Below are positions 54,174 through 64,000 of a stretch of DNA of 64,000 bases, piece after piece (the first letter of the stretch is position 1; the number at the start of each line of letters is the position of its first letter). The notes below the pieces were generated by a model that made no database searches, was not told the DNA's origin, and saw only the letters and a list, made by a program, of their open reading frames with translations. Where the stretch lies: the NCBI GenBank assembly GCA_024704765.1, contig JAKMXF010000066.1:1051883-1115882 (forward strand), read 5' to 3'. This DNA comes from Oopsacas minuta (Eukaryota; Animalia; Porifera). A program made the translations under genes and the position numbers.

Positions 54174-57100
54174 ATGAGCTTCAATCATATACAGACACGC
54201 TATATTCATGGAGCTTTAACAAATGCCAACCAGTTTGCAAGTGATTTGAGTTGGTTAGGGCTGTTAGCTTTTGGCAGTCGCAACCTTATCGTGGTAGTAC
54301 ACGCTAACACAGGGCAACTTATACAAACATTAAGTTCGCATCATGCTCCAGTAATACTTGTAAAATGGTGGCATGAAGTACAACCTTACTCTGCTAATGT
54401 ACCTTACTCTCTCAAGCTTGCTTCTGCAGACTCAACAGGCATGATATATGTATGGGATGTTAAAGATGCGCAGGTAATATGCAAGCATATATATATATTT
54501 GCATTAATGCCTTATTTGACCAATTCTCCAATAGGCTCTCACTTATTTTCAAGTATCTTCTAACCCCAAGCAGCCATTGGTTCATATTGAATGGATGAAT
54601 CAGCATGAAGGCTGTCGGGACTCATTAGCAGTGCTGACGTCATCTGGCATCCTTGCTGTATGGAATTCAGGTACAGGCAGTTGTATATGGAGGAGGAATG
54701 TAATAGATTCTGCTGTTTCATTGGAAATTGATCCATTTGATTACACACGAATGTTGGTATGTACTTTCTGAAGAAAATTATATAATTTTAATACAGTCAA
54801 CTCCTGGCCTTAATTGTACGAATATGGTTCCAAACCGTCAAAGTAACATGCCTACATTTTATCGCTTACATAAAAGTAATTATCGCGGTTCCTTAAGCTT
54901 CGATATTACGGGAGTTGACTGTATACATATGCTACTTTGACGGTTTCTGACCATATTATACAATATCAGACTTCGATATATCCGTGTTTGGTATGACAGA
55001 AGTTGCCTGTACCTAATTTATAATATAATCGCTCGATAGATTCTAGGTAATGACCATCTGTTGTTAATAAACGACTCTACTCCATACAAACAGCCTCAAT
55101 CCCTGAAGCAACTATATCTGAGATTCCTACAACAATCTTACCCATCTCACAACAAACAGAGTATTGACATTCATATTTCCACTGAGAAACCTCCAAAGAA
55201 TGAGATTAACACTCCACACCAGAATTTGCTTGCTGTACACTTTTCAAAATTCCATCGTAATGTAATACTGCTACTCTATAGATTTAGTATTGTATTTCTA
55301 CATCTCACTGGGAGGCAAGCACTGTCACAGATTACATTGGATAAAGGTACTTCTCCATTCTTGAAGGTGAGATTTGTTGTATTTTCTACAATATTTTGAG
55401 CTTATTAATCGTTCAATTTGCTAGATTGTAACATGCAGACAGAGAGATGCAGTTTACGGACTGCATGAAAATAGTTCACTTTCATTTCGCCTCCAGCAAT
55501 CATACAAGAATTCTCGTTTCAATTCAGAAACAGACAATACTGTTGAGAACCATTCGAATGAGTTATTAGTTGCAAGTCCTAATATCAGAACAAATAGATC
55601 ATTATCTACACATTCTATTGATGAACGTAGTACAAATAATTCTGTATACTCCTTATCTTCAGAATTCTACTACGAGTTGAAATGCCAGGCTGACGTCATG
55701 AGGGAAGTTACACGAAATGCTAGACATGTAAGTTTGTAAGTAGCATACCAGTGTTGTCAGATCAAAGTTTATGCCGCAAACTTGAAAGTTCATGCTATAG
55801 TCTTGCCAAACGAAAGGTTCATGTCCAAAGTCATATTAAAGTCAAAACTTTGTTCACTATATGGCAACACTGCAATACGTATCGAAAATTTGCATTTTGT
55901 TGTGTTAGGTCCAGCTAAATTTATGCTTGTCAACTGAATCAAGAATGGTAATACTGTATCCAGAAGGGAAGATACAAGTGTGGGAGCTTACACCCAAGAG
56001 TTTAGGTATAGCTGGTAGCTCTACTCTAGCAATACATCAGTCTATAGGACCTAATCCAGCAGATATAACACAAGCACCTAAGATTACACAAGTGAATTCA
56101 CTCAGTAGTTATATAGCTAGCGAAGCAGAGCTCCTTACTAATGATATGTATCGTGACAGATGTCATATTGTTACATTCAGATTCTCTATTGGTAAGCAGT
56201 TACAAATACAGAAACATTCCACTGTATTTTAAATTTGCAGAATGCAAATGTTATGTTTTGTCTATTTACATCTCTATTCTATATGATGTAGTAAGCTACT
56301 ATGAGGGATTATTCCACAATCCAACCTGTATTCGTATGGGACCAGCCATGACCACAAAGAACAAATCAGTCTATAAACCTCTCCTAGCAGTAGGCAGCCA
56401 TCAGGGTCGTGTACAGATATTCAACTTATACTACCATACACCTATACGTACATTCTCAGTAATAAATTGTCCAGTGATTGGAATACAATGGACTAGCATG
56501 TATAGTATGTTAGTATACGGACATACAGAGCCTGCATTAACTGGTCAAGTAAGGTAATTCTCCTATGTATTGATTTGTATTGTATACATTATCCTCAGGT
56601 TTAGAACCGCTCTTATATGCAATATTTTGTTAGAAACGAGATCAGCTATCTTGACCTCAATTCTGGAGAGTCTGTTACATTACGTAAGGGCCATCTCTCT
56701 GAACCTGACTGTCCAATAGAAAGCATAAAGGTATCCAGCTTAAAACAGTATTTCTTAGTTGTATTCAGAGATAAACCGCTAGAATATTGGGATCTATTCA
56801 CACTCACCCCTATACGAATTCTATCAGCACCAAATCCTATTACTACAGCTGTAGAATGGGCTCCTGCTAATATTTCTAGTAAAATGCGAGCTCAGCACAC
56901 ACAGAAGAAACCTGGACAAGGTGAAACGTATTTCCAAGAAGTGTATTTGATGTCTGATATTGATGGAATACTCTATCAGGTTATTTTACTGCCAATAAAA
57001 TCTAAATACAACCTGTGCCGACAGCGTAAAATATTTTGAAAAATGCCACTATAAATTGGAGGCACTATACATTTTAAATTTAACCCCAACACACATAGTG

Positions 57101-60044
57101 TCTCAAATTAATAGTGCCACTTCGCTTAAAATGTTATGCTGTCGACACAGATTGTAATTTTAGATTTTGACATGCTCTATCAATAGATTGTTGCTGAAGG
57201 CACTACTCTACGAGAAGCGAGTAGATTTAGTCCTGAGACAGCTATGGGTGTAGTAACCAGTATATCTTGGAAAGGAGATTTGATTGTGATTGGTGATAGT
57301 GATGGGAACCTTTCTCTCTGGGATACAAAGACTAAAAAATATAAGGTAGAACGTTTTGGGGGCCAAAATTCAATATTTTTGAATTTGGGGTCTTTGAGTT
57401 ACTTCACATAATTTAAAGGGTGATGCAAATATACAGTGAAACCTCCACATCGGGGCTTGTGGAAACGGAGTGACAAAATAAAGCGATTTCCTAATCTCGT
57501 GCAACCGGGTAGCCCCGTATGTTGAGGTTACACTGTATATTCATACATTGACTGTTCGTTAGATGTTGCAAACAGCTCGTGGCGGAATCAAACAATTACG
57601 TATTGGACCTGGGAAGGGTAATTTCAAACTATTCATTCTCTCTCACAACTGGGTTGAAGTTAAAGACATAGCAAATAACTCTGAGCTGTGCGGACAGTTA
57701 AAACAGTCATTCGATGCATGTGAATGGGTTAATCCTGATAAATTGTGTATGTTGAATGTGAGTGAAGGCTGGATTCGTATTTCAAATTTAGCATTTCTAC
57801 AGGAAAATGATCCATCAAAGAAGGACCAATTGACCACGCCGATTTTCTGTCCACACTTAATGCGCCAGGCAAAACCAGCTTTCCTACTTAGAACATTATT
57901 ACAACATCATCCATGGTTAGAACGCTATGATGCAACATCGTTTGAAGATGTTGGTATCACTAGTTTATCTGTGAAACGTGAAGTTCTTGCTTCCCTGTTG
58001 TTAATCCCTGATTTGTATATTTCTATGCTGAACAATGCCAAATTAGGTGTAGCTGAGCGTTGTTGTATAAGTTCTATTTTGTATGGAGATTCTAATGAGC
58101 ATTCTTTCTGGTTACTAGCACTGCATTATTTGAGGGAATTCTCCAAACAGAAGAAAAGTAGTTTCAATGGAGATGGTTTGTTAATAATCCATTATTTCTT
58201 ACAGTAATACCAACCACTTTTACAAATTTTCGGCATTTTTTCAATATTTTGCCGGTATTTCACGTTGTTTCCCCCTTTGTACACCAAAAAATCCAGAAAT
58301 TTAGTAGAACAATTGAACATTTTCCGGAATTTCAAAATATCCCTTAAATAGGAAGTGAAATTCTCGGAGAGTTGGCAATTATTAAATTTTACCCTCTTCC
58401 ATCCTCATTTTCAAAAGATCTATTTTACTCTTCTTCACATCTTTAAGATCAAACAGATTCAGAACTTGGCTTAAAACCTATCAAACCTAGACAACTAGGA
58501 TCTGACTTATTCGTACCAGAAAGAAATGCATTAGAAAGAATTACATCTTCCAGGGAATGCCTTTTCAATCCAGACAACAAGTCTGATACAACCGAAACGA
58601 ACTACAACACAGTCTTCCTTGGTAATACACAATCAATTAAAATTAATCGCCAAATCTATATAATGATCACATTAGTATACACAATACACTAAATATTCAA
58701 TAATAGATGCGAAAACTAATAACAAAGTCAACGCAACCAGAATTAACATTTACCTCTGAAAAAAAATATATTAATTAGACAATATACTTGAAATACGTTA
58801 AGCTGCAGTAATAATTAGAAATCTAAGTTAATATTGCCAAATATAGTGAATTTATGGAAAACTGTAATATCTTTAGATTTACCAAAACTTGAGCTTTCGC
58901 ATGATCTACTTTGCGATCGTTCTAGCTATCAGCTGTTAGCCTTAAAATGGCAAGATATCCTAGAAGCTAACAGACGTACACCGTTACAGACACGAGAATG
59001 CGCAGGTCAGCTGATTCAGATAAATGAAGCTGATAGAGCAGTGCAATTACTATTAGAAACAGATTCTAATGATCCTAATTATCATGTGGATAGTCTTAGA
59101 GCTTGTTTGGTCGCGACTATTCGTTCTAGTGGAGCTTCTCAGAGTACTATAAAACTTGTAGCGACTAGTTTGATAGCTAACGGGCATTTGGAAAAAGGTG
59201 TTGAATTGTTATGTCTAATTGATAAAGGGCTAGATGCTTGCAGGTGAATATGAATTCAATAAAAATGAGATATTTCCAAAGTCAGATTGACTATACAACT
59301 TTTAAAGGATCTTCCCCCTCGAATATTATACAATATAACATCCACAAACGGGTACCAGGAACGCCTAATAATGCTACCCAGTTTCTGCCAAATTCCCCAG
59401 GTTCCTTTTCATGGAATTCGATCATATATTTTTCGCTCCGTTCTAGAAGTTCCTAGTTTATATAGAGCCCCTTTGTGGAAGTTACTGTATACAAATTTAT
59501 CTAATGTAAAATATAAACTTTCCCCAACTTAAAATACTCGTTACATCATATAACCAATACAAATCCTATTAGATACCTTCAGACATACAGAAAATGGTAT
59601 GAAGCAGCACATCTAGCTAAATCAATACTAAATGCTAATGAGTGTCATGAAGTATTCATGCGGTGGGGTGATCACCTCACAAGCCCTATGGCTAACAGGC
59701 AACAAGGCATTCTAGTGTATTTATCTATATTTGAGTTCCAGCGTGTGTTAGAAATGCTCTATGCAATGCGGTACTTTGAGAGAGCAGCTCTGTTGGTGGA
59801 AGCTTGTTTAGAGTTTAATGTATTGGATTTGGCTATACCAGAAGTACAGTCTATTTGTGAAGCTATTTTCCTGGAATATGCTAGGGTCTTGTTCAGCTTA
59901 GAATATATTATAGCTGCGGAATATTACTCCAACAAATCTGGAGAAAACGGTAGAAAATTACTGAGTGAGTTCCGATCAAAACAAGAAGAATTAGATGATA
60001 CAATTGTGGATACTAATACGGATGAGTCTAAATTCCAGATATAA
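54174..60044 (+). CDS. WDR11: WD repeat-containing protein 11, multi-exon
   Basis: GALTNANQFASDLSWLGLLAFG, LKLASADSTGMIYVWDV, GPAMTTKN, LLAVGS.QGRVQIF, YFLVVFRDKPLE.W, GDSNEHSFWLLA, ADRAVQLLLET, LRACLVATI, LVATSLIANG, LIDKGLDACRYLQ. Confidence 0.93.
54794..55009. mobile_element. Family A MITE (54794-54921) plus adjacent half copy (about 54931-55009), in WDR11 intron
   Basis: TA-CAGTCAACTCC ... TTCGATATTACGGGAGTTGACTG-TA, then inverted core ending AGAAGTTGCCTG-TA. Confidence 0.8.
57043..57161. repeat. Dispersed repeat family F, in WDR11 intron
   Basis: CAAATTAATAGTG...AAAATG.TA.GCTGTC..CACAGATTGTAATTTT recurs at about 60190-60251. TATAGTGCCTCCAA (reverse complement) recurs at about 49741. 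Confidence 0.5.
57434..57535. mobile_element. MITE, family B, in WDR11 intron
   Basis: TA-CAGTGAAACCTCCACATCGGGG ... CCCCGTATGTTGAGGTTACACTG-TA. Confidence 0.8.
58202..58383. repeat. Dispersed repeat family E, in WDR11 intron
   Basis: CAGTAATACCAAC ... GAGAGTTGGCAATTAT imperfect inverted ends, AAAATCCAGAAAT core. Confidence 0.5.
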
Positions 60045-60274
60045 TTTATAATATGTATATTACTTGGGTATAATCATATTTATTTGGTAATTGTTGTCAA
60101 AATCATAGTGCTATAATTGAATATACTAATTTCCTCGCTCTACTCTGTAAATCCCTTAAAATGGCAATATTCATTTGAAGCACTTAATGCCTCAAATTAA
60201 TAGTGTAAATTTAATGAAAATGCTAAGCTGTCCTCACAGATTGTAATTTTGATATTAACCGAATTAGCGTTATA

Positions 60275-63200
60275 ATGAATGTACAGAAGAGATTCATTGC
60301 ATATGCAGTTATCTTGGGGAGTATTCTTGCCCTCATGATCGTGAGTTACATTTTGTAAGAGTATATAGCTCAAAAATATGATTTATATTATTCTTGAACT
60401 TTATAGCTCATTTCGCTGATTCTTACCATCTTGACTGCACTATTAGGAGGCTACGCAGTATACTGGAATGGACCTGATGGTGATATATTTTCCGCGGTAA
60501 GTTATGTATTAATTCAACTGTTAAATATGTTTATTATATTTTTCTTCAGTCAACTTTGGTCTATTTTCATGCTATGTTTGGATTTGCAGCCATAGGAGCT
60601 TATCTCATTATTGTGGGTAAGTCAACATGATTATTTTGTACTTTCCTCGCTTTCCTTGCCTTTTTTCGGCATACGTATATTGCCTGAAGTATTCTAGTTG
60701 GGGAATGGTACTCAATATTTATTATGTGAGGCTCAACATATCGTATTTGCTTTTATACTTATCCGTGGTTATTAAACTATTGTAAAACTACTAGCATAGT
60801 TGAATTAATGTTGGCTGAACCTAAGTCTAAGCGTCTGAAGTGGAGTCCAGATCCTCAGAACATTGCTTGGGCGAACGATAAGACGAAATTCGGCCTGAAG
60901 ATGATGAAGGAGATGGGTTGGCAAGAAGGAGAAGGTCTTGGCATGAACGGCCAAGGCTCAAACAAACACATAGAAATACGGCCTGTAGTTGATAATAGAG
61001 GCCTTGGCTGTGGGCCGAACTCCGAATCGCAACATCAACCAGAATTCGAGGAAATACTGCGCTCCCTCAACGAACAATATTCAACCAATAACAAAACTAC
61101 AAACAATGACAAAATACGTTTTCCAATTGAACACGGCGCAGCAAAGTCTCGACCTTTACGCTACAGAAAGTTTATACAAGCAAAAGACTTGTCTAGTAAA
61201 ACCAGCGATGAATTATCTTGTATTTTCGTTACAAATCAGTCACGTAGTGAAAGCGAAGGAAGTTTAAATGAAACCTCAAAATTAGCAGAGGTCAGACATT
61301 TGAATAGAATACTTGAACAGAATGTAGGAAGTGAACGAATTGCTGTGGATATAACAACAAAGGAAAGGTTTGAAACAATTTCTAAAGATGATTCTAGAAA
61401 TTCTATAACAGACAAAGGACAGTTAAATCGTGATTTCCTTCGTCCAAAGAAACAGTCAAAGCGTATTAGGAAGAAGCATATAGACAGTTGACTAATTAGT
61501 AATAATTCTATCATTTGTTCAGACTATCCAATTTCTTCATACATTAGTGGAGGTGTATTTGTATTCAATTATAATTAGGAGGTTGTAATATATTCAATCA
61601 ATTCAATTAAACTCTTATATTATCTCTCCAGCTTTCTTTGGATATACAGCAATAGTGTTTAGATGGAGAGATGGATTCATTTGGGTGAGTTGATCATGCA
61701 ATTTTCACATAAATTAGATTATATAACGTGTTCTATTTGACCTGGCTAAACATTGTTGTTGTTGATGTTTGTTGGATTAATAACATATCCAATTTATATT
61801 TGCAGTTGGTTATTTCTATATGTATTATAATCCAATTAGTGTATTTTGATTTGCAACTAATCAGTAACTAAGATATATCCCATTAACAGAAATTTCTTTA
61901 GTTTTGGGTTCACAAGTACTCACTAGACTATTGGTTGAAATACTAATTGTTTGTTAATCAAACTAATGGGTTATAGAAGGATGTTTGTGTTGATCTAATT
62001 ACCCTCGAGCTAAAATTAATTGAACTCTCCAATGGTACAGTTCCCCCATGTGTTCCATCTCATTATCAGAATTTTAGTGTTAATGCTAAAATAATTGTTT
62101 GTTTCTGGAATTAGCAATACAAGTATAATTTGGTTTGTGCGAGGTTAAAGATCAACTACCTACTTATTAATCTGTTTATACAATATGTAATGGTTACAGT
62201 CAGTAAACAAATACGATAGCAAATGTCATATTTCCCCCACTACGCTGTATTCTTTCTTGACTCAAATTACCATCATTTTTTTGCGAATACTATGTGAATT
62301 ATCTTATTAGTAAAGCCTGGATTATCTCGGGAATTCAAGTGTCATCCATGAGAAAGTATTTTTGCTATATTTCTGGGTATTTTATGGTGGAAAAGAGGAA
62401 TAATGTGAAATTCCGAGAAAATTGTAATAGGGGTTGTCACGCATATTTTGCTCACCTCCGCCGCAAATTCGGGAGAATCTTTTTGCATTTATTACAGACC
62501 TTCCCTATATTTACAACTATCTCTTCTAATAATGATGTTTCAACCTAATTTACTGGTTAATACCTGTTTTCATTTGTATGATTCAATTCTGTTTTAGTAT
62601 TAATAATATCTACAAACCAAAATATACGATCTCCTGTTAACAAATTGTATTATTACATTACATAATCTCTAATTTCAATAATCACATGATGAGGTAATTA
62701 TGTATTAATCACATGAAATAGGTAATTTATCCCTTGGAATAAATGTTTTTATCAAAAATATAGATTTCAATTCCCTCGTGACTCGACAATAATACATTAC
62801 ATTTCTGATTACAAATATTTTAATCCAGGAATACCATATATCCTAGCAGGTGTTAAAATCTTTTTCTCAGATGCTTGAACTCAGTTTTGTGAATATTAGT
62901 TTGTAAATTACCTTAGAAATATCACTAATAACTTGAACTTGAACTTTGAATGATAATTACGGAAATACACTACTTTTTCTAACGATAATTCCAGTTATTT
63001 CAATAAATAGTACTTCCCTTTTATGAGAATAATTGATTGGTGGTTGTACTACATCTTCCCCTTCCCTAAATCCATCCCATGATGACTGATGAGGATAGTT
63101 CATCTTATTGGTAATGCTTCAACAAACAACTTTGCACATGTGTATTACGTGTTTAGAAGATTATTCAGCAATTTGCCAGCTATGCAGCATTTGAATATTC

Positions 63201-63325
63201 TACTCTGCTACTGGATATTTTATGTATTTAATATTACGTATTATTCTTAGTTAGTTTTCTTCTGCGTTATCATCATCGTTGGAGAAGTTGGGATGGCAGT
63301 TTACGTCTATCTTGAAAGAACCAAT
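60275..63325 (+). CDS. Tetraspanin-like multi-pass membrane protein, small exons absent from the ORF track; 3' end unresolved; intron 3 hosts PINX1
   Basis: Exons 60275-60340, 60407-60496, 60550-60616, 61632-61684 splice in phase to MNVQKRFIAYAVILGSILALMI/LISLILTILTALLGGYAVYWNGPDGDIFSA/STLVYFHAMFGFAAIGAYLIIV/AFFGYTAIVFRWRDGFIW. Probable TM3 exon 63251-63325 (LVFFCVIIIVGEVGMAVYVYLERTN); an alternative phase-0 candidate starts at 61806. All sites GT-AG. Confidence 0.65.
60808..61491 (+). CDS. PINX1: PIN2/TERF1-interacting telomerase inhibitor 1 (G-patch protein), intronless, nested on the same strand
   Basis: MLAEPKSKRLKWSPDPQNIAWANDKTKFGLKMMKEMGWQEGEGLG (G-patch) and YRKFIQAKDLSSKTSDELSCIF match PinX1/Pxr1. 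Confidence 0.9.
   Translation: MLAEPKSKRLKWSPDPQNIAWANDKTKFGLKMMKEMGWQEGEGLGMNGQGSNKHIEIRPVVDNRGLGCGPNSESQHQPEFEEILRSLNEQYSTNNKTTNNDKIRFPIEHGAAKSRPLRYRKFIQAKDLSSKTSDELSCIFVTNQSRSESEGSLNETSKLAEVRHLNRILEQNVGSERIAVDITTKERFETISKDDSRNSITDKGQLNRDFLRPKKQSKRIRKKHIDS
62316..62490. repeat. Dispersed repeat family E, inverted copy
   Basis: TTTGCTATATTTCTGGGTATTTT (62361-62383) is the near reverse complement of the core at about 31410. Confidence 0.5.
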
Positions 63326-63452: not shown

Positions 63453-64000
63453 ACAACAATTCTATGAACTTTACTATTATACAATTATTATGACATTGGA
63501 TTATTTCGTTAATTTTCTTATCAAAATCTCTAACAATCATGAAATATGAGAGTAAACTATACGTTTGATTTTCGGTGATCCCGTAACTAACGAAGTATAT
63601 AGTTGTTCACGATCACGAATACTTAGTATGTCACGTAATGCACCATTTTCCTACTAATCATTGTTCTCCACCAAAACTCAAATTGATTTATTCATGGAAT
63701 ACTGAATTATTATTTCAACTATTTTTCACTCTTCAGAAAATTCTGAGATTCTATGATACATCACCGAATCTTGGTGGATAATTTGGGGCCTTATGGTCAA
63801 AATACAGGCTTTTTCAATTTTCTGATCATTGTGAATTTTCTAAATTTCGGACTACGTATTCATGGTTGATTATTTCATAACATTCTAAAATTCCATTTTG
63901 CCATACCCGCTGAATATTTCAACTTAGAACTTTACTCAACTATTTAATTAATTTCCATTCCATTGTGTTTCATCTAGTTAGTCGACTTGCTGCCTTATAT

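Follow-up and report, generated by a model that had tools for sequence, protein, structure and literature searches.

The last part of a 64,000-nucleotide (nt) window on contig JAKMXF010000066.1 of the glass sponge Oopsacas minuta (the window being the whole stretch of DNA analysed, in which all positions below are counted) holds two genes, one inside the other. The outer gene, hereafter the host, is a tetraspanin-type gene of ten exons and 256 codons that runs from an ATG at 60275 to 67281 (stop included), far past position 61684, where an earlier sequence-only reading had left it. The inner gene, an apparent PINX1 orthologue, is an uninterrupted open reading frame (ORF) at 60808-61491 that lies on the same strand as the host and entirely inside host intron 3. 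Host exon 3 ends with ...GTG G/GTAAGT at 60616 and exon 4 begins with CTCCAG/CTTTCTTTGGA at 61632 (slashes mark splice boundaries here and below). The two exons join in phase 1, G+CT giving alanine, all host introns after intron 3 being in phase 0, and 140 nt separate the PINX1 stop from exon 4. The coordinates proposed in the sequence-only reading (60616, 61632, 60808-61491, an intron of 1015 nt and a spacer of 140 nt) all hold on direct reading.

The evidence that the host splices over PINX1 comes from sequencing runs of a single sample. Four runs cover the stretch and three of them behave as DNA. The fourth (X4) was taken as complementary DNA on the strength of its GT..AG joints (59241>59571, 60340>60407 and 60496>60550) and Illumina adaptor tails, no library type being recorded, and it is kept as contigs, the depth of which shows presence only and is a poor measure of level. 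One X4 contig ends at 60616 and runs on into the first 12 letters of exon 4, while in another the last 17 letters of exon 3 stand before the start of exon 4. The junction 60616>61632, on which the sequence-only reading had staked the nesting, is thus present, and the 1015-nt intron with PINX1 is therefore spliced out of the host mRNA. PINX1 itself is covered by X4 contigs (60885-61163 and neighbouring parts) at a depth of about 1000-2400. In the bin 61412-61545, into which the final 80 nt of the ORF fall, the depth is 65, and in host intron 4 it is 2-7. Since coverage drops again before host exon 4, the PINX1 RNA is more than a plain retained intron. The host splices over an intact, expressed, same-strand PINX1.

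Reading the window's own contig past the window end (L001) supplied the last four and a half host exons, and all exons past 61684 were found by reading on and by comparison with relatives. The resulting ten-exon model is identical to a public protein, KAI6659327.1 / A0AAV7KDH6 ("CD63 antigen [Oopsacas minuta]"), the 256 residues of which hold all ten exon translations in order and at exactly the predicted positions. This record was reached via an exon 7 profile built from seven assemblies, exon 7 corresponding to its residues 141-172. The possibility of two separate genes flanking PINX1 is ruled out by the RNA junction and the public protein. The host is therefore not unannotated, as had been supposed; what the protein collection lacks is the PINX1 product.

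From its sequence, the host appears to be a divergent tetraspanin. The full protein from the stored record passes the cut-off of the PF00335 Tetraspanin profile, albeit marginally (34.2 vs 32.1 bits, E 2.6e-8), and the match spans profile positions 4-223 of 225. Its four hydrophobic segments (exons 1/2, 3, 5 and 8/9), together with hydrophilic exons 6-7, give the pattern of a small and a large extracellular loop. It has a Glu in the third transmembrane (TM) segment, as tetraspanins do, and its large loop carries four Cys that are the same in all seven assemblies: an adjacent pair (CC), one encoded by exon 7 and one by exon 8. It departs from the family in that its loop motif reads CC-x-F-G where the canonical form is CCG, although hhalign puts CC-x-F-G on the CCG of its paralogues, and in its ten exons, since most of the best-scoring tetraspanin matches in the same genome are single open frames; 'CD63 antigen' is the name given in the public record. 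Other searches were less telling. A hidden Markov model (HMM) built from 19 tetraspanin paralogues of O. minuta, each a single open reading frame, gave the full protein 3.9 bits after bias correction, in a full-length and colinear alignment; among single exons only exon 8 beat 300 shuffles with this HMM, and hhalign per exon gave P values of 0.002-0.64, placing exons 2, 5, 7 and 8 correctly. Pfam found no tetraspanin in single host exons 1-3 and 5-10, and a six-frame PF00335 search of the genome found no match on the window's contig. A PDB sequence search with KAI6659327.1 gave no match, and the ESM Atlas no usable match with exon 7. The single-sequence AlphaFold model, of low confidence (mean predicted local distance difference test score 60.7), has helices at residues 3-43, 52-84, 87-142 and 177-236, and Foldseek of this low-confidence model against the PDB returned no match with E <= 0.001. 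The host may be among the most highly expressed genes in the X4 sample, its exons (60206-60616, 61632-61684) having a summed depth of tens of thousands as against about 600-900 for the upstream gene WDR11, with the reservation that contig depth is a poor measure.

The inner ORF, for its part, is probably best described as the only PINX1 orthologue of the genome. A G-patch is found near the N-terminus of its product (PF01585, E 2.2e-10, 40.7 bits against a cut-off of 22), and its named relatives in a homologue search are all PIN2/TERF1-interacting telomerase inhibitor 1 (E 1e-27 to 4e-29), identity to vertebrate PINX1 being 36-46% over 62-83% of the O. minuta query. With its N-terminal G-patch and basic C-terminal tail it resembles the PinX1/Gno1(Pxr1) G-patch nucleolar proteins, from which it differs in being shorter (227 vs about 330-360 residues) and in its intronless gene. 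The 61-Mb assembly holds a single PINX1 copy, the other G-patch matches reaching only E 3e-4 and 1e-3; because this is the sole such gene, it would be an orthologue, and a retrogene with a surviving parent gene is ruled out. An mRNA copy of a relative's PINX1 was also sought, but the short Logan contigs L032 and L004 are colinear genomic DNA. An exact look-up of the 227-residue product found no entry in a collection of 15 billion proteins (a differently bounded model would escape it, and records of this genome may be lacking there), and no O. minuta entry was seen among the PINX1 homologues in a homologue search of the protein collection. The nested PINX1 is probably missing from the public O. 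minuta annotation, although the host protein is there.

The arrangement was compared in O. minuta and six other assemblies (L002 and L005-L009), each with one PINX1 relative (50-73% identical). In all six, the order is that of the window: WDR11, host exons 1-3, PINX1, host exons 4-9 and an ankyrin-gelsolin gene, the last being seen where the retrieved locus reached far enough. Exons 2 and 3 lie just 5' of the PINX1 ORF in every relative and exon 1 in all but L007, while exons 5-9 follow exon 4 in order, exon 9 not being found in L007. Host exon identities range from 41 to 96% across the relatives, and every AG/GT found is retained. In each of the seven assemblies intron 3 contains a long ORF, and no other host intron does. 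Because exons 1-3, PINX1 and exons 4-9 are colinear in six other assemblies and AG/GT is kept, the arrangement is far beyond chance, and by the same comparison the nesting arose before at least three diverged glass-sponge lineages parted. The claim that a same-strand PINX1 is nested in a tetraspanin-type intron thus finds support in the RNA contig junction, the conservation in seven assemblies and the PF00335 match, and we regard it as close to certain that this is a same-strand nested architecture formed by an old gene pair.

Clues as to how PINX1 RNA is made come from the short sequences on either side of its ORF (Table 1). Upstream, the exon 3 donor is 118-293 nt from the PINX1 ATG in an otherwise poorly conserved region, where an alignment shows the four letters T-A-G-C to be invariant in seven of seven assemblies, with variable flanks. 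This TAG/C lies 13 nt before the PINX1 ATG in O. minuta and 19-27 nt before it in the other six, and an element resembling a branch point (YTAAY) is found ~20-25 nt further upstream, i.e. at branch-point distance. A similar motif, (A/T)TTAG/C, precedes the host ATG by 6-7 nt in each of the six assemblies in which exon 1 was found. Judged by these features, TAG/C fits the footprint expected of a trans-splice acceptor and is a candidate site, a spliced leader of roughly 37 nt having been described in the glass sponge Aphrocallistes vastus (PMC10282587). Alternatively, (C/T)TAGC might be a core-promoter or initiator element common to host and PINX1, in which case PINX1 would have its own promoter and no trans-splicing. 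This would agree with the short but variable distance of the motif (6-27 nt) from both ATGs, and with the presence of the leader on only 4% of A. vastus long reads (PMC10282587), but it sits less well with invariant letters that include AG and with a YTAAY at branch-point distance upstream, and we consider it improbable.

The same upstream region has also suggested that PINX1 serves the host as an alternative 3' terminal exon, with exon 3 cis-spliced to the AG at 60793-60794 or 60798-60799 to give a 2-TM/PinX1 fusion or a bicistronic RNA. Such a fusion had been predicted in the sequence-only reading, and one part of the prediction stands: splicing to the AG at 60798-60799 would be in frame with the PINX1 ATG (V-E-L-M) in O. 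minuta, as in L002 and L005. The element resembling a branch point and the conserved AG upstream of the ATG also speak for this scenario. However, four of the seven assemblies lack the in-frame AG, and if the AG conserved in all seven is used, the frame of exon 3 either runs into a stop or does not match that of the PINX1 ATG. Neither the joint 60616>60795 nor 60616>60800 is among the X4 loose ends listed, where other joints appear down to depth 9, and PINX1 retains its own ATG in seven of seven assemblies. The 2-TM/PinX1 fusion is thus no conserved product and is without RNA support, and a role of PINX1 as terminal exon of the host seems very improbable.

Downstream, the PINX1 stop is 105, 116, 118, 140, 182, 183 and 187 nt from the exon 4 acceptor in the seven assemblies. 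The near-identity of the O. minuta distance with the 141 nt of another nested case in the window (DARS2/beta-TrCP), to which the sequence-only reading had drawn attention, is a coincidence, because this distance is short but not fixed. In six of the seven assemblies the interval contains ATTAAA, a candidate poly(A) signal for PINX1. In O. minuta, L005 and L006 it precedes the acceptor by 20-24 nt, and in L007-L009 it follows the PINX1 stop by about 36 nt.

Taken as a whole, the best explanation of these observations, and one that we think rather probable, is an old nested pair with a separately made PINX1 mRNA. PINX1 transcription would start within the 100-260 nt that separate the conserved TAG/C from the exon 3 donor, a spliced leader would be trans-spliced onto the TAG/C acceptor before the PINX1 ATG, and cleavage and polyadenylation within the 105-187 nt that lead up to the exon 4 acceptor would form the 3' end. 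That PINX1 is made as its own mRNA in just this way, with its own start in intron 3, a leader at TAG/C and a poly(A) tail added before exon 4, is in our view an evenly balanced proposition. Since PINX1 is intronless, it adds no internal splice sites that could disturb host splicing. Several points weigh against this scenario. TAG/C could be a promoter or initiator element instead of an acceptor, and no leader-joined read at 60795 is found among the best-supported X4 loose ends listed. ATTAAA is absent from the 3' flank of PINX1 in L002. The hole in X4 depth at 61412-61545, where contigs are missing, extends over the final 80 nt of the ORF and so cannot place the PINX1 3' end; more generally, X4 consists of contigs of unrecorded library type, from which RNA starts, ends, strand and levels are unreadable. 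Finally, the evidence for the junction between host exons 4 and 5 (61684>63251) consists of conservation and the public protein and includes no reads.

A different route to two mRNAs would be an operon inside an intron. A promoterless PINX1 would be cut from the host transcript by leader trans-splicing at TAG/C and polyadenylation ~20 nt before exon 4, one host transcript thus becoming either tetraspanin mRNA or PINX1 mRNA. There is something to be said for this: only 100-260 nt, mostly unconserved, lie between the exon 3 donor and the acceptor motif, the candidate ATTAAA is 20-24 nt from the host acceptor in three assemblies, and the neighbouring genes are co-oriented with short spacers. A small diverted share of host transcripts would moreover be enough, as the host seems far more abundant than PINX1 in X4, insofar as contig depth, a poor measure, can tell. 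Were this true, competition between cis-splicing on the one hand and trans-splicing with cleavage on the other would set the ratio of the two mRNAs, a coupling that would have persisted ever since the glass-sponge lineages parted and might be a general route for their same-strand nested genes. However, no precursor or leader read is among the X4 loose ends listed. As a rule in nematode trans-splicing, acceptors that lie downstream of a 5' splice site are cis-spliced, so that host transcripts should yield joints between exon 3 and PINX1, none of which is among those listed. It is for this reason that an own start of PINX1 is preferred over release from the host transcript, which we regard as rather unlikely.

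Table 1. Features of the host gene and the nested PINX1 (window positions; positions on contig L001 in brackets for exons past the window end at 64000)
Feature	Position	Strand	Basis or occurrence
Acceptor-like TTAG/C motif, AG at 60266-60267, 6 nt upstream of host ATG	60264-60268	+	Kept in relatives
Host exon 1, residues 1-22	60275-60340	+	X4 joint 60340>60407 (GT..AG), relatives, public protein residues 1-22
Host exon 2, residues 23-52	60407-60496	+	X4 joints on both sides, relatives, public protein
Host exon 3, residues 53-74 and first base of codon 75	60550-60616	+	X4 contigs, relatives, public protein
Host intron 3, 1015 nt, contains the whole PINX1 unit	60617-61631	+	X4 loose ends at 60616 and 61631 spell the junction
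Acceptor-like TAG/C motif, AG at 60793-60794, 13 nt before PINX1 ATG	60792-60795	+	Seven-assembly alignment
In-frame AG, candidate fusion acceptor	60798-60799	+	Found and in frame in O. minuta, L002 and L005 only; L006-L009 lack it
Putative PINX1 orthologue, intronless, 227 codons, G-patch at residues 27-68	60808-61491	+	ORF reading, Pfam, named relatives, X4 contigs
Candidate poly(A) signal of PINX1, ATTAAA, 20 nt ahead of the exon 4 acceptor AG	61606-61611	+	At the matching position in L005 and L006
Host exon 4, remainder of codon 75 and residues 76-92	61632-61684	+	X4 contigs, relatives, public protein
Host exon 5, residues 93-117, third TM segment with conserved Glu	63251-63325	+	Relatives 68-96% identical, public protein
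Host exon 6	63978-64046 (window ends at 64000)	+	Relatives, public protein
Host exon 7	64980-65075 (L001 3363-3458), past window end	+	Relatives, public protein
Host exon 8	66224-66310 (L001 4607-4693), past window end	+	Relatives, public protein
Host exon 9	66992-67072 (L001 5375-5455), past window end	+	Relatives, public protein
Host exon 10 with stop	67195-67281 (L001 5578-5664), past window end	+	Public protein

The remainder of the host gene and its surroundings deserve a brief description. Host introns 4-8 (61685-63250; L001 1709-5374) measure 650-1570 nt in O. minuta, where the mean intron of the genome is 341 bp (PMC10280926), and are mostly long in the six other assemblies, introns 5 and 8 being shorter in L002, L005 and L006 (about 190-320 nt). 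These introns hold no ORF of more than 66 codons in O. minuta and at most 104 codons in any assembly, and an Rfam search of the host region, introns 4-8 included, gave no match. A first candidate for exon 5 at 61806-61871, which ends in a stop, was rejected: its X4 depth is ~4, its coding character is not conserved, L002 having a stop in it, and the public protein uses 63251. After its AG, the frame of this segment opens like the true exon 5 (LV.. C.III) and runs to the stop, and weak similarity to it is found in L002, with the internal stop, and in L005; it may be a decayed exon 5 duplicate or a rarely used terminal exon. Another candidate exon ('CCYG') near 64376 was not taken into the model, since it forms no part of the public protein and a tblastx comparison showed no conserved block at this place. 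Upstream of the host, WDR11 (TPR_WDR11 domain) occupies 58834-60044 on the same strand, with an RNA-supported intron at 59242-59570, and its stop (60042-60044) is 230 nt before the host ATG. WDR11, the tetraspanin gene with PINX1 and the ankyrin-gelsolin gene are all co-oriented, an order retained in the related assemblies. In the spacer before the host gene, a 70-nt stretch (60181-60250) has a second copy, about 80% similar, in a DNA contig of another run (X1), at what corresponds to about window 57090-57160 and about 1.9 kb before that contig's match to window position 59000; the stretch may be a short dispersed repeat.

Placed among known systems, this locus is a well-supported ordinary case, since both the frequency of nesting and the leader have already been published for glass sponges. 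In A. vastus, 2432 nested genes make up 12.4% of all genes (PMC10282587), and PINX1 shares with them that it is a single-exon gene wholly inside an intron and conserved between glass sponges. With 12.4% of genes nested and about one gene per 3.7 kb, about two nested genes are expected per 64 kb; the two cases seen in the window, which the sequence-only reading took as a hint of a genome-wide mechanism, are thus simply the number expected at the published rate. The A. vastus genome paper mentions no PINX1/CD63-like tetraspanin pair and gives no strand breakdown or processing mechanism (PMC10282587), and the O. minuta genome paper makes no mention of nesting, trans-splicing or tetraspanins. Only 83 nested genes are annotated in O. 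minuta, low counts in some genomes having been blamed on a disabled gene-predictor option (PMC10282587), and the absence of PINX1 from the protein collection fits this explanation. Nested genes that are skipped by predictors can pass as gene losses, and PINX1, if unannotated, would be such a false absence. This annotation gap matters because the O. minuta genome has been described as "lacking key metazoan core genes" (PMC10280926).

Two further comparisons bear on the processing of the pair. The locus resembles the spliced-leader operons of nematodes and tunicates (PMC1657053, PMC7668243) in the common orientation of its genes, in spacers of about 100-200 nt, in a putative acceptor shortly ahead of the downstream ATG and in a candidate poly(A) signal near the next acceptor; in contrast to these operons, PINX1 sits inside a host intron and not after the host. 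Parallel nested genes, on the same strand as their host, have been noted in the ctenophore Hormiphora californensis, in human and in fly (PMC8527503). Same-strand cases make up 29% of the nested genes of Drosophila, and 72.5% of these cases have, like PINX1, a single exon (PMC3814207). Parallel nesting requires separate processing of both genes, and how same-strand nested genes are processed is a question that was raised, and left unanswered, in the ctenophore genome paper (PMC8527503). A deeply conserved pair with an acceptor-like TAG/C before both ATGs offers a good locus at which to address it. Unlike the parallel nesting of Hormiphora and Drosophila, the PINX1 pair is conserved across at least three diverged glass-sponge lineages, and its inner member is no young testis-biased duplicate but, as far as its sequence tells, a housekeeping single-copy orthologue.

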